64,000 bases of DNA, taken from NCBI RefSeq assembly GCF_963921235.1, contig NC_086123.1:31000001-31064000 (forward strand), written 5' to 3'. The DNA comes from Mobula hypostoma (lineage: Eukaryota). The position numbers and the translations under genes are program-made. This document shows positions 7,578-60,370 of the stretch, piece by piece. Below the pieces are notes generated by a model. That model was not told where the DNA came from. It worked only from the letters and a program-made list of their open reading frames with translations, and made no database searches. The stretch's first letter is position 1; each line of letters starts with the position of its first letter.

Positions 7578-8045
7578 TCAGCCTCCACGTAGCCGGAGCA
7601 GCAGAGAGATGGTGGTTAGTGGTCTGATGTTGTAGTAGGAGAGCAATCGCCCATCCTCCAACTGTTTGCCCTCGTAAACCAGGCGCTGCTGGTCGGGTCT
7701 GACTCCCTCCTGCCGATGGACCCGCTCTTTAAACTTCTGCACGGACTCAGAGGGCATCACGTCGTACGTCGTCGTTTTCCCCTTGTCGTTCAGGAGAAAT
7801 ATCTGCATGGATTCCTCTTTCCTGACCAGCAACATGACGGTGGGGCTGGGGTTGAGGTTGTAGTAGCTCAGACTTCTGTCGTCCTGCATCTCCACGCTTT
7901 GGCCATTTTGCATCATCAGACGCTGTTGGGAAATGGGCACGTTGGTCTTTTCCTGGATTTTCATCTTGAGTGTCGACACTTGAATGGAAGGGTCGACATC
8001 AAGGTCGAAACCATCGCCGGTGATGAACCTCACCTGAAGTCTCAT
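7578..8045 (-). CDS. isg15: ISG15-like ubiquitin-like protein, copy 1 (155 aa, two UBLs, exposed LRLRGG)
   Basis: Tandem UBL with C-terminal LRLRGG-stop; acceptor cctttctctacag 12 nt upstream of ATG (exon starts 8057), i.e. a 5'-UTR intron as in fish ISG15; upstream ISRE. Confidence 0.9.
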
Positions 8046-8728
8046 CTTGTCAAATCGCTGTAGAGAAAGGAGAAGTGATTAGAGAGTTTTTACACCAGAT
8101 GTGCATGAACTATGATGTATTAATATGGCATTGCCTATAATATCAACATAATTAGACTATTTACTAAGATCTGTAGACAAACGGGAAAAGACAGACCCCT
8201 CTTTCCCAGCAGTTCTGAATGTGTGACAGGAATTTTGAGCCGCAATACTGACAATTGACGGGAGAGGGACTCCGTGAGCCGGTGGGTTTAAACATTTTTG
8301 AACCTGATTCGATCAGCAGCAAAAAAATGTGTAAATGTCTCATTGGGACCGTAGTAAGTGTGCAACTTGTTTAGATTTCTAAGCCAGGACCATTCCAACC
8401 GCCGCTTAATAGGGGAAAAAAAATCACTTTTGTCACATCGCGTTAATGGTGTACCGGGGAGAGCATTCGGACTTGTTGCATCACCGTCTGATATGGAGGG
8501 ACCACGACACAGGGTCAGAAAAAGCTGCGGAGGGTGGTAAACTCATCCAGCTCCATCATGGGCACCAACAGAGGGTATCTTCAAAAGGTGATGTCTCAAG
8601 GAGAAGGCATCGATCATTCTCGGCCTGCAGGTCATGCCCACTTCTCATTGCTACCATCAGCGAGGAGCCTGAAGACTCACGCTCAACGTTTTAGGAACAG
8701 ATGAACTAATGAACAGTATTTTTGTCTG

Positions 8729-9599: not shown

Positions 9600-9790
9600 G
9601 CTTTATCTTCTGCTCCCGTTTCTGAACGTCACCGCACCGCTGGGCTGATCTCACGGCCCGCTGTCGCTGTGTTGACAAACAAACCAATCAGGTTCCAGCC
9701 GAAGTTTCGTTTCCGAAAAATTCCCCGCAGTAAATTGGAAACGTTTTCGCTCTGTTACAGGGTTCAACGCTATCGGCTGATTCACTTTCG
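9600..9790 (-). promoter_or_regulatory. ISG15 copy 1 promoter: ISRE GGAAACGAAACT (9703-9714), abutting kB-like GGGGAATTTTTC (9715-9726), IRF half-match GAAAGTGAAT (~9780-9789), CCAAT, GATAAA TATA-like
   Basis: Motif matches in a CpG-rich block ~1.6 kb upstream of the coding exon, conserved in all copies. Confidence 0.8.
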
Positions 9791-17141: not shown

Positions 17142-17609
17142 TCAGCCTCCACGTAGCCGGAGCAGCAGAGAGATGGTGGTTAGTGGTCTGATGTTGTAGT
17201 CGGAGAGCAATCGCCCATCCTCCAACTGTTTGCCCTCGTAAACCAGGCGCTGCTGGTCGGGTCTGACCCCCTCCTGCCGATGGACCCGCTCTTTAAAATT
17301 CTGCACGGACTCAGAGGGCATCACGTCGTACGTCGAGGTTTTCCCTTTGTCATTCAGGAGAAATATCTGCATGGATTCCTCTTTCCTGACCAGCAACATG
17401 ACGGTGGGGCTGGGGTTGAGGTTGTAGTAGCTTAGACTTCTCTGGTCCTGCATCTCCACGCTTTGGCCATTTTGCATCATCAGACGCTGTTGGGAAATGG
17501 GCACGTTGGTCTTTTCCTGGATTTTCATCTTGAGTGTCGACACTTGAATGGAAGGGTCGACATCAAGTTCGAAACCATCGCCGGTGATAAACCTCACCTG
17601 AAGTCTCAT
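17142..17609 (-). CDS. isg15: ISG15-like protein, copy 2 (155 aa)
   Basis: Tandem UBL, LRLRGG-stop; acceptor 12 nt before ATG (exon starts 17621). Confidence 0.9.
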
Positions 17610-18293
17610 CTTGTCAAATCGCTGTAGAGAAAGGAGAAATGATTAAAGAGTTTTTACACCAGATGTGCATGAACTATGATGTATTAATATGGCATTGCCT
17701 ATAATATCAACACAATTAGATTACTTACTAAGATCTGTAGACAAGCGGGAAAAGACAGACCCCTCTTTCCCAGCAGTTCAGAATGTGTGACAGGAATTTT
17801 GAGCCGCAATACTGACAATTGACGGGAGAGGGACTCCGCGAGCCGGTGGGTTTAAACATTTTTGAACTTGATTCGATCAGCGGCAAAAAAATATGTAAAT
17901 GTTACTCATTGGGACCGTAGTAAATGTGCAACTTGTTTAGATTTCTAAGCCAGGACTGTTCCAACCGCCGCTTAATAGGGGAAAAAAATCACTTTTGTCA
18001 CATCGCATTAATGGTGTACCGGGGAGAGCATTCGGACTTGTTGCATCACCGTCTGATATGGAGGGACCACGACACAGGGTCAGAAAAAGCTGCGGACAGT
18101 GGTAAACTCATCCAGCTCCATCATGGGCACCAACAGAGTGTATCTTCAAAAGGTGATGTCTCACGGAGAAGGCATCGATCATTCTCGGCCTGCAGGTCAT
18201 GCCCGCTTCTCATTGCTACCACCAGCGAGGAGCCTGAAGTCTCACGCTCAACGTTTTAGGAACAGATGAACTAATGAACAGTATTTTTGTCTG

Positions 18294-25823: not shown

Positions 25824-28729
25824 ATGAGTGGTGGTAAAATTCTTCTGAGGTGTATATATTTCAATGCTAGGAGTATTGCGGGGAAGGCAGATGAATTGAG
25901 GGCGTGGATTGACACGTGGAATTATGATGTTATAGCAATTAGTGAAACTTGGCTACAGGAGGGGCAGGACTGGCAGCTTAATATTCCAGGGTTCAGATGT
26001 TTCAGATGTGATCGAGGCAGAGGAATGAAAGGTGGGGGAGTAGCATTGCTTGTTAGGGAAAATATTACAGCAGTGCTCAGGCAGGACAGATTAGAGGGCT
26101 TGTCTACTGAGTCCTTATGGGTGGAGCTGAGAAACAGGAAAGGTATGGCCACATTAGTGGGATTGTATTACAGACCACCCAATAGTCAACGAGACTTGGA
26201 AGAGCAAATCTGCAAAGAGATAGCAGGCAACTGCAGGAAACATAAAGTTGTGGTGGTAGGGGATTTTAATTTTCCATACATTGATTGGGACTCCCATACT
26301 GTTAGGGGTCCAGATGGTTTAGAGTTTGTAAAATGTGTTCAGGAAAGTTTTCTAAATCAGTATATAGAGGGACCAACTAGAGGGGATGCAATATTGGATC
26401 TCCTGTTAGGAAACGAATTAGGGCAAGTGACAGAAGTCTGTGTAGGGGAGCACTTTGGTTCCAGTGATCATAACACCATTAGTTTCAATTTGATCATGGG
26501 CAAGGATAGATCTGGTCCTAGGGTTGAGGTTCTGAACTGGAAGAAGGCCAAATTTGAAGAAATGAGAAAGGATCTAAAAAGCGTGGATTGGGACAGGTTG
26601 TTCTCTGGCAAAGATGTGATTGGTAGGTGGGAAGCCTTCAAAGGGGAAATTTTGAGAGTGCAGAGTTTGTATGTTCCTGTCAGGATTAAAGGCAAATTGA
26701 ATAGAAATAAGGAACCTTGGTTCTCAAGGGATATTGCAACTCTGATAAAGAAGAAGAGGGAGTTGTATGAAATGTATAGGAAACAGGGAGTAAATCAGGT
26801 GCTTGAGGAGTATAAGAAGTGTAAGAAAATACTTAAGAAAGAAATCAGGAGGGCTAAAAGAAGACATGAGGTTGCCTTGGCAGTCAAAGTGAAGGATAAT
26901 CCAAAGAGCTTTTACAAGTATATTAAGAGCAAAAGGATTGTAAGGGATAAAATTGGTCCTCTTGAAGATCAGAGTGGTCAGCTTTGTGCGGAACCAAAGG
27001 AAATGGGGGAGATCTTAAATAGGTTTTTTGCATCTGTATTTACTAAGGAAGCTGGCATGAAATCTATGGAATTGAGGGAATCAAGTAGTGAGACCATGGA
27101 AAGTGTACAGATGAAAAAGGAGGAGGTGCTTGCTGTCTTGAGGAAAATTAAAGTGGATAAATCCCCAGGACCTGACAGGGTGTTCCCTCGGACCTTGAAG
27201 GAGACTAGTGTTGAAATTGCGGGGGCCCTGGCAGAAATATTTAAAATGTCGCTGTCTACGGGTGAAGTGCCGGAGGATTGGAGAGTGGCTCATGTTGTTC
27301 CGTTGTTTAAAAAAGGATCGAAAAGTAATCCGGGAAATTATAGGCCGGTGAGTTTAACGTCAGTAGTAGGTAAATTATTGGAGGGAGTACTAAGAGACAG
27401 AATCTACAAGCATCTGGATAGACAGGGGCTTATTAGGGAGAGTCAACATGGCTTTGTGCGTGGTAGGTCATGTTTGACCAATCTGTTGGAGTTTTTCGAG
27501 GAGGTTACCAGGAAAGTGGATGAAGGGAAGGCAGTGGATATTGTCTACATGGACTTCAGTAAGGCCTTTGACAAGGTCCCGCATGAGAGGTTAGTTAGGA
27601 AAATTCAGTCGCTAGGTATACATGGAGAGGTGGTAAATTGGATTAGACATTGGCTCGATGGAAGAAGCCAGAGAGTGGTGGTAGAGAATTGCTTCTCCGA
27701 GTGGAGGCCTGTGACTAGTGGTGTGCCACAGGGATCAGTGCTGGGTCCGTTGTTATTTGTCATCTATATCAATGATCTGGATGATAATGTGGTAAATTGG
27801 ATCAGCAAGTTTGCTGATGATACAAAGATTGGAGGTGCAGTAGACAGTGAGGAAGGTTTTCAGAGCCTGCAGAGGGACTTGGACCAGCTGGAAAAATGGG
27901 CTGAAAAATGGCAGATGGAGTTTAATACTGACAAGTGTGAGGTATTGCACGTTGGAAGGACAAACCAAGGTAGAACATACAGGGTTAATGGTAAGGCACT
28001 GAGTAGTGCAGTGGAACAGCGGGATCTGGGAATACAGATACCAGATTCTCTAAAAGTGTCATCACAGGTAGATAGGGTCGTAAAGAGAGCTTTTGGTACA
28101 TTGGCTTTTATTAATCGAAGTATTGAGTATAAGAGCTGGAATGTTATGATGAGGTTGTATAAGTCATTGGTGAGGCCAAATCTGGAGTATTGTGTTCAGT
28201 TTTGGTCACCAAATTACAGGAAGGATATAAATAAGGTTGAAAGAGTGCAGAGAAGGTTTACAAGGATGTTGCCGGGACTTGAGAAACTCAGTTACAGAGA
28301 AAGATTGAATAGGTTAGGACTTTATTCCCTGGAGCGTAGAAGAATGAGGGGAGATTTGATAGAGGTATATAAAATTATGATGGGTATAGATAGAGTGAAT
28401 GCAAGCAGGCTTTTTCCACTGAGGCAAGAGGAGAAAAAAACCAGAGGACATGGATTAAGGGTGAGGAGGGAAAAGTTTAAAGGGAACATTAGGTGGGGCT
28501 TCTTCACACAGAGAGCGGTGGGAGTATGGAATGAGCTGCCAGACGAGGTGGTAAATGCGGGTTCTTTTGTAACATTTAAGAATAAATTGGACAGATACAT
28601 GGATGGGAGGTGTATGGAGGGATATGGTCCGTGTGCAGGTCAGTGGAACTAGGCAGAAAATGGTTCGGCACAGCCAAGAAGGGCCAGAAGGCCTGTTTCT
28701 GTGCTCTAGTTTCTATGGTTTCTATGGTT
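25824..28729 (+). mobile_element. CR1 LINE with uninterrupted ORF2 (942 aa, APE endonuclease + RT; CDS 25824-28652), no ORF1
   Basis: YFNARS, ISETWL, VGDFNFP, SDHN (APE); NYRPVSL, YMDFSKAFD, FADD (RT); (TTTCTATGG)n tail. Confidence 0.95.
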
Positions 28730-29667: not shown

Positions 29668-30135
29668 TCAGCCTCCACGTAGCCGGAGCAGCAGAGAGAT
29701 GGTGGTTAGTGGTCTGATGTTGTAGTCGGAGAGCAATCGCCCATCCTCCAACTGTTTGCCCTCGTAAACCAGGCGCTGCTGGTCGGGTCTGACCCCCTCC
29801 TGCCGATGGACCCGCTCTTTAAACTTCTGCACGGACTCAGAGGGCATCACGTCGTACGTCGAGGTTTTCCCCTTGTCATTCAGGAGAAATATCTGCATGG
29901 ATTCCTCTTTCCTGACCAGCAACATGACGGTGGGGCTGGGGTTGAGGTTGTAGTAGCTCAGACTTCTGTCGTCCTGCATCTCCACGCTTTGGCCATTTTG
30001 CACCATCAGACGCTGTTGGGAAATGGGCACGTTGGTCTTTTCCTGGATTTTCATCTTGAGTGTCGACACTCGAATGGAAGCGTCGACATCAAGTTCGAAA
30101 CCATCGCCGGTGATAAACCTCACCTGAAGTCTCAT
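29668..30135 (-). CDS. isg15: ISG15-like protein, copy 3 (155 aa), nearest to OASL
   Basis: Tandem UBL, LRLRGG-stop; acceptor cctttctccacag, exon starts 30147. Confidence 0.9.
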
Positions 30136-30794
30136 CTTGTCAAATCGCTGTGGAGAAAGGAGAAATGATTAGAGAGTTTTTACATCAGCAGGGCATGAAC
30201 TATGAGGTATTAATATGGCATTGCCTATAATATCAACATAATTAGACTATTTACTAAGAGCTGTAGACAAACGGGAAAAGACAGACCCCTCTTTCCCAGC
30301 AGTTCTAAATGTGAGACAGGAATTTTGAGCCGCAATACTGACAATTTAAGGGGGAGGGACTGCGTGAGCCGGTGAACTTAAACATTTTTGAATGTAATCC
30401 GATCAGCGGCAAACAAATGTGTAAGTGACATTTGTAAATGCACATGTGTAAATGTGCAATTTGTTTAGATTTCTAAGCCAGGGCCATTCCAATCGCCGCT
30501 TAATAGGAAAAAAATCACTTTTGTCATATCGCTTTAATGGTGTACCCCGCATTCGGACTTGTTGCATCACCGTCTGATATGGAGGGACCACGACAGAGGG
30601 TCAGAAAAAGCTGCGGAGGGAGGTAAACTCATCCAGCTCCATCATGGGCATCAACAGAGTGTATCTTCAAAAGGTGATGACTGAAGGAGAAGGCATCGAT
30701 CAGTATGGGCCTGCCGGTCATGCCCGCTTCTCATTGCTACCATCAGCGAGGAGTCTGAAGACTCACGCTCAGCGCTTTAGGAACAGATGAACTA

Positions 30795-30967
30795 NNNNNN
30801 NNNNNNNNNNNNNNNNNNNNNNNNNNNNNNNNNNNNNNNNNNNNNNNNNNNNNNNNNNNNNNNNNNNNNNNNNNNNNNNNNNNNNNNNNNNNNNNNNNNN
30901 NNNNNNNNNNNNNNNNNNNNNNNNNNNNNNNNNNNNNNNNNNNNNNNNNNNNNNNNNNNNNNNNNNN
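30795..30967. other. Assembly gap (N run) at the position of the intronic inverted microsatellite
   Basis: Flanks match those of 8729-8800 and 18294-18352. Confidence 0.95.
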
Positions 30968-31769: not shown

Positions 31770-32180
31770 CTCGCTTTATCTTCTGCTCCCGTTTCTGAAC
31801 GTCACCGCGCCGCTGGGCTGATCTCACGGCCCGCTGTCGCTGTGTTGATAAACAAACCAATCAGGTTCCAGCCGAAGTTTCGTTTCCGAAAAATTCCCCG
31901 CAGGGAATTGGAAATGCATGCGCCCTGTTACAGGGTTCAACGCTATCGGCTGTTTCACTTTCGGATTCCGGGAATGACACAACAGCTGGAAGCCGAGAAT
32001 GCGAAGCCGGATCTGAATTGAATATAACCTTAGACGTGTCATCTCTGAATACAATTATGTGGTTCATGAAGTGACTATGTAAGTGATAAAATGTAACACA
32101 AGAAAACAATTGTGCTCCATCCACAGCACCTCTATTTCCCCACCTCTGTCGCCCATCTCCCCGAGGACAGAACCGAAACA
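31770..32180 (-). promoter_or_regulatory. ISG15 copy 3 promoter: ISRE 31876-31887, kB-like 31888-31899, second full ISRE GAAAGTGAAAC (~31952-31962), extra IRF-type AACCGAAAC 32171-32179
   Basis: Motif matches. Confidence 0.8.
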
Positions 32181-38019: not shown

Positions 38020-38308
38020 CGCACAGTGAGTCAGCATTGATGGGGCCAGGAAAAGCGATGGAAAGAAAAGGAACCGAACTACGGCGTTATCCACTGAAAT
38101 CGAAATGGGCGCGGTGCTGCCATTAATCAGCTCGAGCGATGACAGCCAACCAGAGCAGTGCCGTGCATAAAATGTAATGTACCGGCAAATTTCACTATAT
38201 TAGAATAATTTGAAGGCGGGGCTGGCGACCGGTTTATAAACAGCTTCTCTGCGGTGGAAGCAAGAAGTTTGGACGCCGCCTGTGAGGAAGAACGTACGCT
38301 CAGTAACG
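38020..38308 (+). promoter_or_regulatory. OASL promoter: AP-1/ARE GTGAGTCAGCA (38026-38036), GAAA-rich tract, ISRE-like GAAATCGAAA (38096-38105), GC box (~38216), TATAAA (38235-38240)
   Basis: Motif matches in a CpG-rich block; TATA ~70 nt upstream of the ATG. Confidence 0.75.
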
Positions 38309-38479
38309 ATGGAGCTACACGAAATAGACCCCGAGAAACTGGACGACTTCATTAAAAAGAACTTGGAGCCAAGCGGATTTAATGTCGAGGTGAGAGAGGC
38401 CATGAACAGGATCTGCGAGTTTTTAAAAAATCAGTGTTTCACCAAACAACCCGACGTTAAAGTGATCAAAGCCGTTAAG
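38309..38479 (+). CDS. oasl: OASL exon 1 ([21 protein letters not shown]...VIKAVK)
   Basis: OAS N-terminal LD.FI...L.P motif; donor AAG|GTGAGT. Confidence 0.88.
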
Positions 38480-41400: not shown

Positions 41401-44400
41401 AATCCTGCACACAAAACATATGCTGGCTATGTTAAACCTGATTTCAATTCTAATTCTGGAAATGTTTGAAAAGAACGATAATTAGATGTGTAACTTTTTT
41501 TGTTGACAGGGTGGATCATCAGGAAAAGGAACAGCTTTAAAAAATAGCTCAGATGCAGATCTCGTCGTCTTTCTCAGTTGCTTCAAAAGTTTCCAGCACC
41601 AGAGAGACACCAGGCATGAAATTCTTGAGGGAATTCGGGCAATGTTGGATAAATATTCTCAAAGCCTTGCATATCAAGTCGATAATATCAATATCAACAT
41701 CATAAAGCAAAGTACCACATCGCCAAAATCTCTGAGTTTTGAGCTGCAATCAAAGAAGAGTTCAGAGACCGTGTCCTTTGATGTTCTGCCAACCTATGAT
41801 GCATTAAGTAAGAATTAATAGCAATGATACGTTGACTATAATTAATAGTAATGTTACATCTCAAATGTAATTTTAATTCTTCTGTCACTGCTTCTGTGGA
41901 TAGGCGGTTTGAAAGGAGCTTGTCTAATTTGCTCTCTTCAGAGTCTTATTCTGAGTCAAGTTGTTGCTGCTGTTGTTAAGGAAGAAAATGCGCTCAGTGA
42001 CCATTTTATTCGGTACTTCCTGTAATCTTGGCCTTCTGCTGCTGTAGCCCATCCACCTCAAGGTTCGAAGTGTTGTACATTCACAAATGCGCTCCTGCAT
42101 GGCTCTGCTGTAACACAAGGCTATTGAATTACTGTCACCTTCCTGTCGGCTTGAACCAGTCTGGCCATTTTCCTCTGACGTCTCACTAACAAGGAGAGTC
42201 TAGCCACTGAACTGCACTCACTGGATGTCTTGTTTTTTATTCGTCTATTCTAAGCCATCTCTAGTGACTGTTGCACATAAGAATCCCAGGAGATCGGCAT
42301 TTTCTGAGATACTCCAACCACCCTGTCTGGCACCAACAATCATGCCACAGTCAGTCACTTAGAATGCATTTCTTCCCTATTCGGATGTTTGATCCAAACA
42401 ACAACTGAACCTGTTGACCAGGACTGCATGCTTTTGTACATTGAATTGCTGCTATGTGATTGGTTGATTAGACATTTGCATTAACGAGCAGGTGTACCTA
42501 ATAAAGTGGCCACTGAATGTAGATTACAGTTCACTTTTTGTCTGTATATGGCACATAAGATTCTTTCATAGGAGAAATAACAAGGAATATTAACCCTAAA
42601 TCTTACTGCTATTGCTTTAACGCTGACATTAAACCAGTTTGATAACAAAATGAATTCCATGGGAAGTCTTGGGTAGCAAGTCTAAAACTTGCTGTTAAAA
42701 GATAATATCTGCCTTTTTCCTTTCCTTTCATAAGAAAGGGATTCATTTTCTTGGCCACTCTTACCAAGATGCAAAAAGCATTAGTCATTATCTTGGGTTA
42801 AATTTACAGGTGATTCTTAGCAGAAATAGAGTTATGGAACACTACAGCATAGAAACAGGCCCTTCAGCCCACCTAGTGCATGCTGAACTATGATTTTGCC
42901 CAGTCCCATCAACTTGTACCTGGACCACAGCCCTCCATACCACACCCATCTATGTATCTATCCGAATTTCTTTTAAATGTTGAAATTGAACCCGCAGCCA
43001 TCACTCTGCTGGCAGCTCATTCCACACACTCACAACCATCTTGTGTGAAGAAGTTCCCCCAAATGTTTTTAAACCAGGGGTTCCCACCCTGGGGTCCACA
43101 GGTTCCTTGGTTAATGGTGCATGGCATAAAAAAGGATGGGGACCCCTGCCTTTAAAATAATCACTTCTCAACCTTAAACCATAACCTCTATTTCTAGTGT
43201 CACCCAACCTCAGTGGGGAAAAAAGCCTGCTTGCTTTTACCCCATCTATAACGGTCATAATTTTGAATACCTCTATCAAATCTCCCCTCATTCTCCTTTG
43301 TTATGCAAACTTCAGCAAACTCTTTCTGGGAACCTTTGGGAAGGTGGAAAATATCCTGAGATTAAATAAACTGGAGTGAATCCAATAGAATGGCCTATTT
43401 GGTCTTGGAGGTGATACTTGACCAGATATTAATCAATAGTCTTTTGACCATGTTCTCATTCATCATTTTATTTCTTGCAGCACCACAGTGTGATAGAAGC
43501 AAAGCACATCTCGAACTAACCCAATTTGCAAACGAGAACGAGATGACAGATGGAGAATTTTCTGCTTGTTTTACGGAACTTCAGAGATCATTTGTGAAGC
43601 GGCAATTTCCAAAGGTTAAAGACTTGATTCGCCTGCTGAAATATTGGTACAAGGAGGTGAGTGACGGAAGAAAGTGATAATTGTTAATCATTGAAAGCCT
43701 ATGGAAGGGTTGTTGTATCAAACCTAAAATGCTATCTTGCTTTGATATCTCAGATTACACCTTCTTCCTCTTTGGCATTTCCTCAGGATCATGGAGTAAG
43801 TGTGTCCCTAGTCCAATGCATCAGGTTCTCAATACAGTCTTGAATATCCCTTCTCCAATTTTGAATGGTTATGGACCGAAGACCCCCAGAATCTTTGGGG
43901 ATGTTGCTATTTGCTTTTGTCTCCCAAGGACCTGCCCAATAGCCAATGCAGGAAACCCATGAGATACCATTGTATGTTTGTGGGCAGAACGCAGCTCTCC
44001 AATGAAATCACTGACTTCCATGGTACAATTTTGGATTGAGTCCCTAGTTTCCAGAGTATACTCCCAGCATGCAACCTGCTTCAGGCTAGAAATGGTCACA
44101 AAGACATTTCTAATTGAATTCAAAATTTATTTTTGATTCAATTTCTCATTCGGTTGAGATTTAACCTAAGGATGTGATGGTCCTCTCTGCTTGACTGATG
44201 GCACCACAGAACTATCAGAGATTGGACAACATGTACTCCCCAACTGACTGACAATATACAGATCATTTCGCCATTTCCATCATTGCCCTGTGTGAGATCT
44301 TGCTTTATACACAAATGGGGTACTTAAATCCAAGTCTTTTCCCTATATATTCTTCTGGTACTCTCAGAACATTCATAAGGCCAAGAAAACAGGAGGAGGA

Positions 44401-47400
44401 GTCATCCCATGGGACTTTGACTTCAGGCTGTGATCATGGCTGACCTGACCTAGATCTCAGTGCAGATTCAGCAATTTGTGTGATGGAGATGTTGAGATAG
44501 GGGCCACTTGGGAATGATCCCATGTAGCCATTGGTCTAGGTGTGGTCTTGGCATGTAACCTCAGGGAGGCTGTTTCATCAGAGAAAATAATGAAGATTCG
44601 AAGTATAGAACCAAAACAGAGGGTAATGAGTGTGCTTAACATCACATTTGCTTATCCGTGATTGTCAATAATTCTCCCTAGTATGTCAAACCACGGAAAT
44701 CAGAGCTGAGAAATGGAGCACGACTGCCTGCAAAGTATGCCTTAGAGTTATTGACCATTTATGCCTGGGAGGAAGGTAATCATCAAGAGAGATTTGACAC
44801 GGCTGAAGGGTTCCGCACAGTCTTGGAACTGATCTGCAGATATCAGGATCTATGTATCTACTGGACTAACTACTATGATGTCAATAATGCAGTTCTTGCA
44901 GAGTTCATAATCAAGAAACTCAGCAACAGAAGGTAAGATTCCCAACCACACTTCAAACTATGCCAAATAATGGGACCCTTTGTTTTTAAATTGGGTTCAC
45001 CTTCTGGATTCTTGTACACACAGGTCCAATAGAAAGTATTACATGGCATCACATTCTTAAAACATAAGACCACAAGGTATAGGAGCAGAATTAGGCCATT
45101 TCGCCCATCAGGTCTGCTGTCATTTCATCATGGCTGTTTCAATTTTCCCCTTAGCCCCAATCTGCTGCCTTCACCTGTATCACTTCATGCACTGATCAGT
45201 CAAGAATCTATCAATCTCTGCCTTAAATATACATAAAGGCTTGGCCTCCACAGTTGGCTGTGGCAAAGAATTCCACAGATTCACCACCCTTTGGCTAAAG
45301 AAATTCCTCCTTATTTCCAATCTAAAAGGACACCCTTCTATTCTGGGGCTGTGTCCTCTGGTGTTAAACTCTCCCACCATACCACTCTATCATGGCCTTT
45401 CACCATTCATTATGTTTCATTGAGGTCACCCTCATCCTTCTGAATTCTAGTGAGTGCAGGCACAGAGCCATCAAATGCTCTTCATATGACAAACCATTCA
45501 ATCCTGGAATCATTTTCGTGAACCTCCTTTGAACCCTCTACAGTTCCGAAGGTAACATCTGAAAGTATCTCTTAATGTTCCTCATTTCCTAACTAACCAC
45601 TGTTGCCTACCTTACTCAGATGATTGACTTCAGAGTCCTCAGCCTTATTTACAATTCTCTACCTCACCACAGTCTACCCTCTGTCACCTCACCATTTTTT
45701 GCCTCCTCAAGCTCTTTTAGCCAGTGTTTCTATTTCACTTTTTGGCCATTTTCCATCAGTAGTAGTATTTTCTGTCAGCTTTCTCTCATCTTATGGAGTT
45801 TTCCGTAGAGTACTTCCTCATTTCAAAGTTTGACTCAAAATCTCAGAATACATTCCTCACATTTTGTGGATGTCCATTTCTGTTTCTGTTGTGATGGCAG
45901 ATGGGGAATGTGTAGATCTGTACGCATTGTGACATGTATTCAGTGATACATCTGTTTGAATTATTGTTACCATGTTTGGGAATACTGTGATGATCAATGA
46001 CAAATTCTGAGGCTGCGGAGGAATGGAGAGTTGAGGCCACAGACACTACCATTGTAGCCGACTAGAGCTGGGCAGGAAAGTTGATTCCTTTTTCTGCTCA
46101 TTGTGCTGCCTGTGTATGGGATGGGGAATGGGTGGCTTTGATGTTCTGATGTTCCTGTCATTCATTCATTTGTTTTTTTTAATTTTGTGGATGTCTGTGA
46201 AGAGTAAGAATTTCGGGTTGTATACTGTATACTTTCTCTGATAATAAATTGAACACTTTTGTCATAAACTGATGGAGGATTAATGCAAATTGATCACAAA
46301 GATGGCCATTATACGCAGTGCGTGTACTGTCAGCAAATAGCTCAAAGTTCAATCTTGTCATTGGAATGCTTTTATTTTTCAGACCGATCATTCTTGATCC
46401 AGCTGATCCAACTGGAAACGTGGCTTCATCAGATGGTTGGAATGTGATGAAAGATGAGGCCAGGAAATGGCTAAGCATGCCTTGTGTCTCTAATGTTGAG
46501 GCATGGGATGTCCAGGTAAGAGTTTGAATAATTGATTTTCAGATATAAGGGAGTGGAGATACATTATTCCCCATTTTCTTTCACCCTGCCAGTGTCTGGC
46601 TACTGATAAACATCCCAGACTGCCTCTGCCCAGGGGATATGCTACAGTCTGTCGCAGGCCTTCTGATTTTGCACTGCTTGAATTGTCCTCTATGGTAATT
46701 TGCAGTCTCTGGTGCTGAAAACCAGCCACCTTACCTCACCTTGTTGCTCATTATTGGGTGGAGTTTCGAGCTAAGCAAGGTCCTGGTGAACATGGCACAT
46801 GTATTACGTGCAGATTTGAATGCCTTGTGACATGGTTCTATTTCATTATCTAGGTTAATCATCCTAAATGTTTAAAGCCTAACCATTTTAAAATACAGTT
46901 GATTACTAGGTAATACACAACCGAAGCAGGGGGTGACCCAGCTTTTGGGGTCTTGAACTGTGGATTTATACAACATGTTTAATATTGGAAAAAACTTATT
47001 GAGGTGGCAATCTTATTGAAACCCATCAAATATTGAAAGGGCTAGACCGTGGACGTGGAGTGGATGCTTCCTACAGTGGGGACTCTAGGACTAGAGGCCA
47101 AGCCTCAGAATAGAGGGACATCCATTCAGAATGGCGATGAGAAGGAACTTCTGTAACCAGAGGCTGGTGAATGTGTGGAATTCATTGTCACAGACGGATG
47201 TGGAGGCCAAATCACTTAGTGTATTAAAAGAGGAGGTTGATTGGTTCTTGATTAGTCAGGGCATCAAAAGTTAAGAGGAGAAAGCAGAAGAATGGGGTTG
47301 AGAGGGAAAATATATCAGCCATGATAGAATGGTGAAGCAAACTCAATGGGCTGAATGGCCTAATTCTGTTGCTATGTCTTATGGATTTAAGTTTTCAGTG

Positions 47401-48984
47401 ATGTGTTTGGGAAAACTGATCGGTGGTAGTATCTGTGGCTGTGGAGGAATGGGCAGTTGAGGTTATAGACATAACTATTTTACCCAGATCAAGCCAAAAA
47501 AGTTCAGTTCTGGTTGATTTCTTTTTCTCCTACTCCTTGTGTTCGATTCACTAAGTTGCTTGACGACAACTGGTAGAAATGATTATAGAATTCAACAGAA
47601 AAACTGAGTTACAACAAGTGAAATGAACAAGTGTCTGACCTGTAACTTGACACTCATCACACCAAAGTGGGTTCCTTTTTTGATTGTATCTTCAGCTGTG
47701 TAACATTAATAAGATGAGGTTTAATATCACAGGCACATGTCATGAAATTTATTATCTTTGCAGCAATGCAGTACATAATAGAGGAAAAAATGACCTACAT
47801 TATGTGTGTGTGTATACTATATCTTAAATAGTTGAATTAAATAAAGTAGTGCAAAAAAGAAAGTTGTGGTGTAGTGTTTGTGGCTTCAATGTCCATTCAG
47901 ACAGGAAGAAGTTGTTGGGTGTGACCTTCAGGCTTCTGTACCTCCACCCTGATGGTAGCAATGACACGAGGGCATGTCCTGGGGAGGGGGGTCTTTAATG
48001 AAGGACACCACCCTTCTGAGGCATCGTTCCTTGAAGATGTCCTGGATACTACGAAGGCTAGTGCCCATGATGGAGCGGACTAATTTTACAACTCTGTGCT
48101 GGTTACCTAATCCTGTGCAGTAGCTCCACTCCCCCACACCACCCATACCAGATGGTGATGCAGTCAGTTAGAAAGCTCTGTCGAAATTTGCAGGAGTTTT
48201 TGGTGACAGACCGAATAGTGGAGAATGGAGCTCCAAATGAACAGCAAATCAGAGTTGTCTGCTGATTGAGACCATGACAGCCTACGCCACACTGTTGGAG
48301 CTCGCAATCCCATGGCACGCATCCACCCTCACTTCAGCCCTTGCAATTTATTCCACAGAGTGCTCTTGGTGCAAGTGTAGTTTTGCACACTAACGACACC
48401 CATAACTACCCTTCAAGTTGTCGTTTCCCATCTCCCTCTTTTGTTTTCTGTCGCCTCTGAAGTATAAAAGGAACATATTTTACTTCTGCCCATTTTTGTT
48501 TTGTTTACCTCAGTCAGTGAAGACATTCCGAGTCACGGTGACGGCCCTGAATGGTAATTCGTTACAGCAAAATGCCAGCATTTACAACAAGGTCTCTGAG
48601 ATCAAACGTGGCATCCAGGAAGAGTGGAACATCCCAGCTCTTCAGCAATGCCTGCAATTCAAAGACACCATTCTGGATGATAGGATCACCTTGCTGGTTG
48701 CCAAGATCTTCTTTGATGCAGAAATCCAGCTGCTCACCCTGAGTGTAATGGAGATATTTGTCGGGATAGACGGGCGTAACCGGACGATCCAGGTTTTGCC
48801 AAGTGACAAGGTTTCAAGTTTAAAAGCTAAAATTGAATCCCTGGAGCGAATCCGGCGAAGCCAGTACTACTTAACCTTTCAATCAACGCCGCTTGAAGAT
48901 GAACGTACACTGCAATCTTACGGCATTACGCAATATTCTACCATCCTTGTCAACCTGAGAGTGCGTGGTGGCAGCGAGATTTAA
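38309..48984 (+). CDS. oasl: 2'-5'-oligoadenylate synthetase-like protein with two C-terminal UBLs; join(38309..38479,41510..41807,43481..43656,44682..44932,46383..46515,48514..48984) = 1500 nt, 499 aa
   Basis: All five introns GT-AG with matching phases (0,1,0,2,0); OAS motifs [63 protein letters not shown]; last exon is a tandem UBL. Confidence 0.92.
38690..38935 (-). mobile_element. L2-type LINE 3' fragment in OASL intron 1
   Basis: [22 protein letters not shown]....LLKVPRV. Confidence 0.6.
38935..39770 (+). mobile_element. L1/Tx1-type LINE 3' fragment (Cys-rich ORF2 C-terminus)
   Basis: [14 protein letters not shown]......CDRC......L.Y.VWSCP.L. Confidence 0.7.
41510..41807 (+). CDS. oasl: OASL exon 2: NTase core ([16 protein letters not shown]); missed by the ORF track
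   Basis: Hand translation; acceptor ttgacag, donor A|GTAAGA. Confidence 0.92.
41991..42519. mobile_element. Tc1/mariner-type MITE with TIRs in OASL intron 2
   Basis: CGCTCAGTGACCATTTTATTCGGTAC ... GTACCTAATAAAGTGGCCACTGAATG, followed by TA. Confidence 0.75.
42830..43280 (-). mobile_element. CR1 3' fragment
   Basis: [12 protein letters not shown]...WNELP. Confidence 0.75.
43481..43656 (+). CDS. oasl: OASL exon 3 ([12 protein letters not shown]...[15 protein letters not shown])
   Basis: Acceptor ttgcag, donor GAG|GTGAGT. Confidence 0.92.
44682..44932 (+). CDS. oasl: OASL exon 4 ([16 protein letters not shown]...[11 protein letters not shown]...LCIYWTNYY)
   Basis: Acceptor ccctag, donor AG|GTAAGA. 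Confidence 0.92.
45060..45545 (-). mobile_element. CR1 3' fragment
   Basis: [31 protein letters not shown]. Confidence 0.75.
46383..46515 (+). CDS. oasl: OASL exon 5 ([14 protein letters not shown]...WDVQ)
   Basis: Acceptor tttcag, donor CAG|GTAAGA. Confidence 0.92.
48514..48984 (+). CDS. oasl: OASL exon 6: tandem UBL ending LRVRGG-SEI
   Basis: Polypyrimidine tract + cctcag acceptor, phase 0; aligns to ISG15 and ubiquitin. Confidence 0.9.
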   Translation, partial: SVKTFRVTVTALNGNSLQQNASIYNKVSEIKRGIQEEWNIPALQQCLQFKDTILDDRITLLVAKIFFDAEIQLLTLSVMEIFVGIDGRNRTIQVLPSDKVSSLKAKIESLERIRRSQYYLTFQSTPLEDERTLQSYGITQYSTILVNLRVRGGSEI

Positions 48985-58366: not shown

Positions 58367-60370
58367 GATATTTTTTCCTACAGTTTCCTGCTTCTGACTT
58401 TGAACGTTTCCTCTGTTAACAGCAACGTCAGATCTCGAAATCGAAACTTAGCCTGAGAACGGGGAAATGAAAACTTGTGCAAAACAATGTTTGAACTTCA
58501 GCCTGTGAATCGACACAAAGATTGTTTACTTGTGTTGAAACAACACCTCTCATCTCCACTCGTTCGATTAACCCTGGGCTGTACTCTTCGCAGTGAAATT
58601 TAACATGATTGCTTCCATTTACTGTATTGCTGAGGTCAGAATTTACACAGAGGGGCCACTGCACTCCTGTAGTAATTGTGGCGCAGAACGCGTCATGGTT
58701 ATGTGCTGGGCTTTCTGAGCTTTGCAATAAGTGACTTTAATTCTTTTTTTCACAGTTGGTATCAAACATCCTACCGAGTGTTTAGTTTCACGGCACATCG
58801 AGTATCATTCACTCGGACAAGCCGATCTGTTCCCTTTCTGATTGGATGAGCTGTGAAGATAGGCATGCAAGTTGTCCAATAGAAGAGAGAGTGGGCTGGA
58901 TGTTTGGGACAACATAACACATGAGGAATGAGCCAAAGAGCAGTTTGATAATAGGTTTGTTTTATTCCACTCCATTTTGACACCTGCTGCCCTTTCCAGC
59001 TCAATTCCACAGAACATTTAATTTCAAATTCAAAGAAAATGTTATTATCAAAGTAGATATATGTCATTATATACAATCCTGAGATTCATTTTCTTGTCTC
59101 TATAATAGTAACTATAAAAGGATTAATGAAAGAATAAATGGTAATAAATAACAAGAACATGAGATAATGAGATAAAGAGTCCCTAAAAGTGAGATCATTG
59201 GTTGTGGGAAGGTTTCAATGATGGGGCAAGCACGAGGCCCTTCATTTTATTCATGAGACTAATGGTTAAGGGGTAGTAACTGTTCCTGAACCTGGTGGTG
59301 GGAGTCCTGAGGCTCTTGTGCCTTCTACCTGATGGCAGAAGCAAAAAGAATGCATGTCCTGGGAGATGGGGATCTCTGATGATGGATGCTGCTTTCCTAT
59401 GACAGCATTTCATGTAGATATTTTTTTCTAGAGTTTCCTGCTTCTGACTTTAAACATTTCCTCTGTTATTTGCAACGTCAGATCTTGAAATCGAAACTTA
59501 GCCCGAGAACGGGGTAATGGAAACTTGTGCAAAAAAAATGTTTGCTGAACGCCAGCCTGTGAATTGACATAAAGATTGTTCACTTGTGTTGAAACAACAC
59601 CGTTCATCTCCACTCCTTTGATTAACCCTGGGCTGTACTCTTCGCAGTGAAACTTAATATGATTGCTTCCATTTATTGCTGAGGTCCGAATTTACACATA
59701 GGGCCACTGCACTCCTGAAGCAATTGTGGTGCAGAACGCATCGCGGCTGTGTCCTGGGCTTTCGGAGCTTTGCAATAAGTGACTTTCATTCTCTTTTCAC
59801 ATGCCTGATATATAAAAAAAGGGATGTAAACAGGATTTGTTTTATTCCAGTCCATTTTGACATCTGCAGCCCTTTCCAGCCTAATTCCACAGAACACTTA
59901 ACATCAAATTCAAAGTAAATTTTATTATCAAAGTACATATATGCCATCATTTTCATCGTTTTCCCTAAGATTCATTTTCTTGTGGGCATACTCAGCAAAT
60001 CTATATAGTAGTAACTATAACAGGATCAATGAAAGATCAACCAGAGTGCAGAAGACAACAAACTGCGCAAATGCAAATACAGTATAAATAAATGGTAATA
60101 AGTAACAAGAACATGAGATAATGAGATAAAGATTCCCTAAAAGTGAGATCATTGGTTGTGGGAAGGTTTCAATGATGAGGCAAGCACGAGGCCCTTCATT
60201 TTATTCACGAGACTAATGGTTAAGGGGTAGTAATTGTTCCTGAACCTGGTGGTGGGAGTCCTGAGGCTCTTGTGCCTTCTACCTGATGGCAGAAGCGAAA
60301 AGAATGCATGTCCTGGGAGATGGGGATCTCTGATGAGGGATGCTGCTTCCCTATGACAACATTTCATGTA
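58367..60370. repeat. Tandem duplication (~1050-bp period), each unit with a perfect ISRE and a Rex-type LINE 3' fragment
   Basis: 58367 and 59417 both start GATATTTTTT; GAAATCGAAACT at 58437 and 59487; near-identical ORFs 59195-59413 and 60149-60418. Confidence 0.85.

Follow-up and report, generated by a model that had tools for sequence, protein, structure and literature searches.

Neighbouring OASL and ISG15 genes in the ray Mobula hypostoma: a probably common origin of their di-ubiquitin-like exons and a most likely coincidental 12-nt acceptor spacing

The terminal coding exon of an OASL gene and its relationship to neighbouring ISG15 genes were investigated in a stretch of 64,000 nucleotides (nt) of the ray Mobula hypostoma (NCBI RefSeq assembly GCF_963921235.1, contig NC_086123.1, positions 31,000,001 to 31,064,000 of the forward strand). 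This whole stretch is here called the window, and coordinates are counted from its first letter. Positions 48514-48984 on the plus strand are the sixth and last coding exon of an intact OASL gene, and three intact ISG15 genes of 155 residues each are found on the minus strand. In both genes a single exon encodes two tandem ubiquitin-like domains (UBL1 and UBL2, together a di-UBL), and the question is whether the two exons are related by descent and whether the spacing between splice acceptor and UBL1 bears on it.

The OASL gene was modelled by tblastn with the Hemitrygon OASL protein (P0291) combined with a splice-site search, giving an intact open reading frame, intron phases of 0, 1, 0, 2 and 0 and a product of 499 residues. 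The coding part of exon 1 (38309..38479) starts with the ATG at 38309 and ends in the phase 0 donor AAG/gtgagt. Exon 2 (41510..41807) holds the nucleotidyltransferase core with GSSGKGT, SDADLVV and FDVLP (Pfam PF01909, E=3e-6), exon 3 (43481..43656) and exon 4 (44682..44932) were placed by tblastn and the splice model, the latter with the OAS1_C domain (PF10421, E=3e-30), and exon 5 (46383..46515) terminates in WDVQ at the phase 0 donor GTC CAG/gtaaga. The identical WDVQ/gt donor is present in exon 5 of emu OASL. Between the acceptor AG (48512-48513) and UBL1 lies a linker of 12 nt encoding SVKT (48514..48525). UBL1 itself (48526..48747) has 74 residues, the length of ubiquitin minus two, and is without the ISG15-type insertion; UBL2 (48748..48972) has 75 residues and a terminal LRVRGG (48955-48972), as delimited by alignment, Pfam and, for UBL2, BLASTP. 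A tail of three residues, SEI, and a TAA stop complete the exon (48973..48984), as compared with Hemitrygon OASL. The exon 6 translation (48514-48981) displays two PF00240 ubiquitin-family stretches in Pfam and was aligned with 20 OASL tails. Identity between the Mobula and Hemitrygon proteins is 70-82% per exon, and the Mobula tail clusters with ray OASL tails in the di-UBL tree (support 99/95, starred). The gene is an ordinary orthologue of known OASL genes. Since its P-loop and all three motifs with the catalytic aspartates are retained in the spliced product, the protein would probably make 2'-5' oligoadenylate upon binding of double-stranded RNA. Because the terminus is LRVRGG followed by three residues, like that of bird OASL, the tail could act as a protein-interaction module or, once trimmed, as a conjugatable ISG15-like module. 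The Mobula stop (48982-48984) directly follows LRVRGGSEI; Hemitrygon has Q there and then 9 further residues, and the Mobula frame past the stop still encodes a similar peptide, LSNAEDPN.

In its nucleotidyltransferase, OAS1_C and tandem UBL domains the ray protein is like those of the OASa.U class (Wang et al. PNAS 2023, PMC10400998), and it shares with other OASL genes the six coding exons, the full tail in the last of them and the junction of WDVQ, four residues and UBL1 found in emu and others. It differs from human OASL, in which the catalytic aspartates are not kept according to the literature, and from mammalian OASL tails in that its LRVRGG plus SEI is bird-like (PMC8764230). It also adjoins ISG15, and its UBL1 has neither the insertion of sarcopterygian OASL nor the 5-residue insertion of bird OASL. 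The tandem UBL of chicken OASL, for which a crystal structure is available (PDB 7SBI, PMC8764230), is described as ISG15-like and conjugation-competent, with LRLRGG and a short tail, and matches the ray tail with E=4e-15 but at about 37% identity. In Callorhinchus milii (L003:21499-21984, P0304) the OASL UBL1 carries an insertion of 10 residues, NFSPSRQSPP-like, before the QQRL motif, which is absent from every other aligned OASL tail.

The coding sequences of the three ISG15 genes are located at 7578..8045 (copy 1, ATG at 8045, 12-nt leader 8046-8057, acceptor AG 8058-8059), 17142..17609 (copy 2, ATG at 17609, leader 17610-17621) and 29668..30135 (copy 3, ATG at 30135, leader 30136-30147), all on the minus strand. 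The products display two tandem UBL domains in Pfam and terminate in LRLRGG and a stop, both signs of the ISG15 family; that of copy 3 is identical to the NCBI protein XP_062890480 of M. hypostoma, annotated as 'polyubiquitin-like'. Mobula ISG15 gives one collinear match to mammalian ISG15 (residues 3-155 to 5-157), and the ray UBL1 scores 47.7 bits to mouse ISG15 versus about 38-41 bits to single ubiquitin. By this specific similarity beyond ubiquitin and by gene layout, the minus-strand genes are assigned to ISG15, an assignment made with bony-vertebrate ISG15 outside the trees. The layout is predicted to be bi-exonic, with a consensus acceptor 12 nt 5' of the ATG in all three copies. Mammalian ISG15 aligns end to end with the ray protein and is likewise a di-UBL ending in LRLRGG, but the ray protein is much nearer ubiquitin (about 45% identity). 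As in teleost ISG15, the complete coding sequence lies in one exon behind a close acceptor, and the ray copies differ from known ISG15 genes in having no C-terminal propeptide, in their tandem triplication and in their linkage to OASL. An identity of the di-UBL proteins of the window as polyubiquitin was considered and rejected, the halves being diverged, with no internal GG and about 45% identity to polyubiquitin for ISG15; the UBL1 C-termini read RKEES in ISG15 and LTLSV in OASL. Vertebrate polyubiquitin genes of the UBB/UBC type likewise have a single coding exon and an intron acceptor few bases before the ATG, but they encode identical repeats each ending in GG, and the leader, 8 nt in a mackerel locus, is out of frame.

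Positions 1-32000 constitute a recent tandem triplication carrying ISG15, with units of about 9.6 (9.56) and 12.5 kb; the units share 95-100% identity and are broken up by copies of long interspersed nuclear elements. One such element, at 25824-28652, has an intact open reading frame of 942 residues with endonuclease and reverse-transcriptase. A run of N at 30795-30967 separates ISG15 copy 3 from its putative promoter.

A preliminary description, made from the letters of the window, had claimed identical geometry for the two kinds of exon, and its readings of the sequence all held. In every ISG15 copy the minus strand shows a polypyrimidine tract and the acceptor cag, then CGATTTGACAAG and the ATG; these 12 nt have no stop in the reading frame of the ATG and would encode RFDK. 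OASL exon 6 starts at 48514 as ...tttacctcag/TCAGTGAAGACA/TTC, and, the exon 5 donor being in phase 0, its 12 nt give SVKT in the UBL1 frame; use of an alternative AG 4 nt downstream would frameshift into a stop. The entire di-UBL is contained in one exon in both genes, through LRVRGG-SEI-stop in OASL and LRLRGG-stop in ISG15. The 43-residue ungapped alignment between the two products was also recovered by BLASTP (31% identity, E=2e-17), and with four upstream codons added on each side F5 pairs with M5 and 47 residues precede the first gap. OASL UBL1 aligns gaplessly with the N-terminal part of ubiquitin too (residues 3-61 to 3-61), and the gapless run is therefore a property of the fold and not a sign of relationship between ISG15 and OASL. 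In Mobula the two 12-mers are identical in 4/12 positions, and those of Heptranchias in 6/12, as counted by hand, where about 3/12 is expected by chance.

The offset between acceptor and UBL1 in OASL was 12 nt wherever sampled, in Mobula, in two copies of Heptranchias (linker PVKE), in two copies of Callorhinchus (PMTE and PVTE) and in emu (PARP). A four-residue linker before UBL1 was likewise found by alignment in the OASL proteins of coelacanth, monitor lizard, bird and dog, and the NCBI models P0291 and P0220 contain it. The exon 5-exon 6 junction, with its phase 0 donor after WDVQ, linker of four codons and UBL1, is an ancestral feature of jawed vertebrates. ISG15 has the 12-nt offset in Mobula (3 copies), Heptranchias and Rhinoraja, that is in a ray, a shark and a skate. 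The leader of the skate Rhinoraja longicauda (L007:9989-10000), 12 nt long and reading TGATTTGGCAAG, includes an in-frame TGA stop, so that the leader is not constrained to stay open. In Callorhinchus the polypyrimidine tract lies directly at cag/ATG and the offset is 0 nt. Human ISG15 exon 2 starts at c.4, as given by the acceptor variant c.4-1G>A (PMC7331931), which places the acceptor 3 nt before the residue matching ray Met1 (ray residue n equals human n+2). Teleost ISG15 has its intron in the 5' untranslated region (UTR) and the complete coding sequence within exon 2 (PMC9680060), and the mackerel polyubiquitin locus displays tag/8 nt/ATG twice, with the leader out of frame. An ISG15 paralogue of Hemitrygon akajei (P0008, NCBI model) is spliced exactly at the 12-nt leader, in phase 0, to give MSTSDE/RFDK/M... 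and 165 residues; its span of 1257 nt implies an exon 1 coding part of 18 nt, an intron of about 759 nt and an exon 2 of 480 nt. This coding exon 1 parallels the exon 1 ATG of mammalian ISG15, and no MSTSDE-like coding exon 1 was found when it was sought upstream of the Mobula ISG15 copies.

Ubiquitin-type genes in general have an acceptor close to a lone coding exon, and the equality of 12 and 12 nt is limited to elasmobranchs. Because the ISG15 offset varies and polyubiquitin has a like layout with 8 nt, the equality can be due to chance. The 12-nt leader of ISG15 is an elasmobranch-specific state of the 5' UTR, and the numerical match in the window is therefore most likely coincidental; the equality by itself is no evidence of common origin. 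The argument from 'plug compatibility' that the preliminary description had drawn from these exons is weak, and the comparison of offsets among vertebrates gave a constant 12 nt for OASL only, against 0 in chimaera, 3 in human and 12 in elasmobranchs for ISG15.

Linkage was the first of the observations bearing on common origin. The ISG15 and OASL genes of the window are divergent (head-to-head), with about 8 kb from the ATG of ISG15 copy 3 to the ATG of OASL. In Callorhinchus a divergent ISG15-like gene of 155 residues is located 5.4 kb upstream of an OASL array, in the hexanchiform shark Heptranchias (CM068661.1) an ISG15-like gene and an OASL array share a stretch of about 60 kb and are oriented likewise, and in the basking shark Cetorhinus an ISG15-like gene is found on the opposite strand within the span of a merged OASL model or array. 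Rhinoraja and Hemitrygon have ISG15-like and OASL genes on one chromosome-scale contig. The linkage covers holocephalans, sharks and batoids, and the divergent layout has been kept for > 400 My. Human ISG15 is at 1p36 and human OASL at 12q24. An isolated ISG15 UBL2 fragment (60% identity over 53 residues) occurs in Heptranchias perlo at L002:13081-13239, 3 kb downstream of the intact ISG15-like gene, and is probably a decayed tandem copy.

The relatedness of the individual domains was assessed in a maximum likelihood (ML) tree under LG+C20+F+G4. All gnathostome UBL1 domains, of ISG15 and OASL alike, form one clade (93/97, stem 0.8), with ubiquitin and all UBL2 domains outside. The approximately unbiased (AU) test rejected a clade of ISG15 UBL1 and UBL2 (p=7e-5) as well as a clade of OASL UBL1 and UBL2 (p=0.011), and separate internal duplications of ISG15 and OASL are therefore rejected. 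On the di-UBL tree, AU tests did not reject OASL monophyly (0.12), ISG15 with sarcopterygian OASL (0.22) or ISG15 with all OASL (0.31). Pairwise scores agree with the UBL1 clade in that the ray OASL UBL1 gives 20-21 bits to the N-terminal domains of chicken OASL and of ISG15 and 6.9 bits per ubiquitin unit. In UBL2, ISG15 and sauropsid OASL have 8/17 non-ubiquitin states in common, and true OASL orthologues 9/19. Among the former states is an ISG15-type UBL2 motif of the xDKGxxxTYxV type, present also in coelacanth and bird OASL and partly in chimaera OASL. Among PDB entries chicken OASL ranks below ISG15 and both rank below di-ubiquitin, and since a true orthologue, chicken OASL, has this low rank, the ranking is uninformative on descent. 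No FAT10 chain was among the best 60 PDB matches, where ISG15 was present.

Several results weigh against common descent of the two modules. Chondrichthyan ISG15 and OASL have only 2/15 derived residues in common in UBL1 and 2/14 in UBL2, and no indel is common to them, since ISG15 UBL1 has three additional residues where OASL UBL1 is ubiquitin-spaced. The Mobula OASL tail is 34.9% identical to di-ubiquitin versus 30.9% to Mobula ISG15, and the OASL tail and ISG15 both score linear di-ubiquitin above mammalian ISG15. The UBL1 clade is unstarred and unites two long branches, to which long-branch attraction could contribute. The trees were built without bony-vertebrate ISG15, FAT10 and NEDD8, and searches with di-UBL proteins mostly returned polyubiquitin. 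Finally, co-regulation of two interferon-stimulated genes, and not origin, could be what keeps the linkage. A check by domain trees, as the preliminary description had advised, placed OASL UBL1 with ISG15 UBL1 apart from ubiquitin (93/97).

Weighing both sides, a single ancestral di-UBL cassette, contained in one exon and with halves already differentiated, is the probable source of the OASL and ISG15 di-UBL exons. The gene models, offsets, linkage and tree topology are observed. The ancestral cassette would probably have come from a gene of polyubiquitin type whose intron lay just 5' of the ATG, its two halves would have diverged before it was copied, and one copy would have come to lie behind the exon 5 donor of OAS before the ancestor of jawed vertebrates, after which the two loci would have stayed neighbours in cartilaginous fishes. 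The duplication event and its direction are what we infer, and nothing in the ISG15 and OASL data here separates a fusion giving OASL from a fission giving ISG15. The local duplication suggested in the preliminary description is thus supported by linkage, the UBL1 clade and the AU tests, and hardly by its argument from 12-nt geometry.

A somewhat unlikely alternative is that the OAS exon 5 donor took up ISG15-type cassettes repeatedly, by gene conversion or exon replacement, so that OASL tails differ in age by lineage and the coelacanth tail is a recent ISG15 copy. The OASL tail of the coelacanth Latimeria chalumnae (P0449) does group with ISG15 in the di-UBL tree (98/92, starred) and in both domain trees. 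Its identity to ISG15 of cartilaginous fishes (shark, ray) is 47-51%, versus 28-40% to other OASL tails, and it has the ISG15-type insertion of three residues (VQQNGH versus VQNGQS). Since its UBL1 starts with Ile and not Met, an error of gene joining is not obvious, and the tail could have been replaced secondarily by an ISG15 cassette. Squamate OAS genes are moreover reported to have gained UBL domains independently (PMC10400998). Against repeated uptake stand the AU tests, in which a grouping of the coelacanth tail with the remaining OASL tails was not rejected (p=0.12, 0.27, 0.10), the source of the coelacanth OASL, which is a UniRef/Ensembl protein model, and the consideration that a slowly evolving true orthologue could resemble ISG15. 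If the tail is real, nature would have placed an ISG15-type cassette behind the OAS exon 5 donor a second time.

A reading of the 12-nt equality as an ancestral relic is unlikely. In it, the ISG15 and OASL intron 5 acceptors are one ancestral splice site and the linker codons of OASL derive from the leader of ISG15; had ISG15 split off from exon 6 of OASL by fission, the derivation would run the other way. The constant 12 nt of OASL and the 12 nt of ISG15 in all three elasmobranch lineages sampled are in its favour, as are the adjacency of the two genes, the Hemitrygon paralogue with an exon 1 ATG reading through the 12 nt in phase 0 and the phase 0 coding intron after Met1 of human ISG15. The offsets of 0, 3 and 12 nt, three independent ISG15 values, are all multiples of three and in frame, which the 8 nt of polyubiquitin are not, and this speaks against the coincidence argued for above, since a once-coding phase 0 intron, a real relic, fits it better than pure chance. 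The offsets of 0 nt in chimaera and 3 nt in human, however, make the ancestral ISG15 offset ambiguous; the skate leader has its in-frame TGA, the 12-mers match in only 4/12 and 6/12 positions, and with offsets spanning about 0-12 nt in the cartilaginous fishes and human sampled, a chance match in one lineage is not unlikely.

A more specific version is held with equally low confidence: that a single local inverted duplication in the jawed-vertebrate ancestor gave rise to both ISG15 and the tail exon of OASL, the ISG15 intron being the former phase 0 OASL intron 5 or the reverse, with the exon 5 donor re-used in coelacanth. If true, it would account for the ISG15 offsets being always in frame and for the recurrence of exon 1 ATGs in human and Hemitrygon.

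Independent origins are quite improbable. ISG15 and the OASL tail would then each derive from polyubiquitin genes, with parallel relaxation of UBL1, and their adjacency would be kept by common interferon regulation, which fits the ISRE-like motifs (ISRE, interferon-stimulated response element) flanking both OASL and ISG15. Both modules do score best to linear di-ubiquitin, few derived residues and no indel are common to them in cartilaginous fishes, a polyubiquitin gene has the same exon layout, and chondrichthyan OASL UBL1 retains the ubiquitin-type QQRLIF and TLHL. Such origins are opposed by the single UBL1 clade with its branch length of 0.8 (93/97), by per-domain scores that place OASL UBL1 nearer ISG15 UBL1 than ubiquitin, by the xDKGxxxTYxV-type UBL2 motif common to ISG15 and the coelacanth, bird and partly chimaera OASL, and by the conservation of the divergent layout for > 400 My. 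Gene conversion between ISG15 and OASL in Mobula as the cause of the 12-nt match was rejected, the exons being 31% identical and the 12-mers dissimilar.

Two studies date the fusion of OAS and UBL to a time before the ancestor of jawed vertebrates and conclude that OAS1-3 lost the UBL afterwards (Hu et al. 2018, PMC6307210; Wang et al. 2023, PMC10400998). Neither of these studies names a donor of the UBL module or mentions ISG15, and a structural study (PMC8764230) describes bird OASL tails as resembling ISG15. A full-text literature search returned no paper combining ISG15, OASL, synteny and shark, in a coverage that leaves most subscription journals outside, so that novelty is unproven. With a common UBL1 lineage and an ISG15/OASL neighbourhood conserved in three cartilaginous-fish lineages, ISG15 becomes a concrete candidate for the donor or sibling of the OASL UBL, and the origin of OASL, and perhaps that of ISG15 too, becomes answerable by comparative genomics. 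A common cassette would also account for bird OASL substituting for missing ISG15.

Other unusual di-UBL proteins were met in the searches. In the NCBI models of Hypanus sabinus (P0249, 171 residues) and Leucoraja erinacea (P0216, 263 residues) an OASL-type di-UBL stands alone behind a short unrelated N-terminus; both fall within the ray OASL tails in the tree and could be either fragments due to annotation or genuine products of fission. The lamprey Lethenteron reissneri (L005) has 'polyubiquitin-like' proteins (P0265, P0277, P0209) with PARP domains and di-UBL units, whose second UBL has a weak affinity to chondrichthyan OASL UBL2 in the tree (92/59). A single-exon cassette was rejected for these PARP fusions, as their UBL halves match DNA about 1 kb apart and are therefore probably in separate exons.

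Putative promoter motifs were found near both genes. The ISRE-like GAAATCGAAA lies at 38096..38105 on the plus strand, about 210 nt 5' of the OASL ATG, and the ISRE-like GGAAACGAAACT and GAAAGTGAAAC lie at 31878..31963 on the minus strand, upstream of ISG15 copy 3, with GAAAGTGAAAC at 31953. The former of these two, with a spacer of 1 nt, occurs about 1.65 kb upstream of every ISG15 ATG, recurring near 9705 and 19261 for copies 1 and 2. The strict ISRE pattern GAAANNGAAACT had no match near the OASL or ISG15 genes, which have relaxed motifs only; interferon control of OASL and the ISG15 copies is putative. Elsewhere in the window two perfect ISRE matches, GAAATCGAAACT, are present at 58437-58448 and 59487-59498, with no coding gene recognised downstream of the pair. 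Each of them is followed by a second GAAA-rich element, and the two segments that hold them, about 1 kb from each other, match at about 88% identity.

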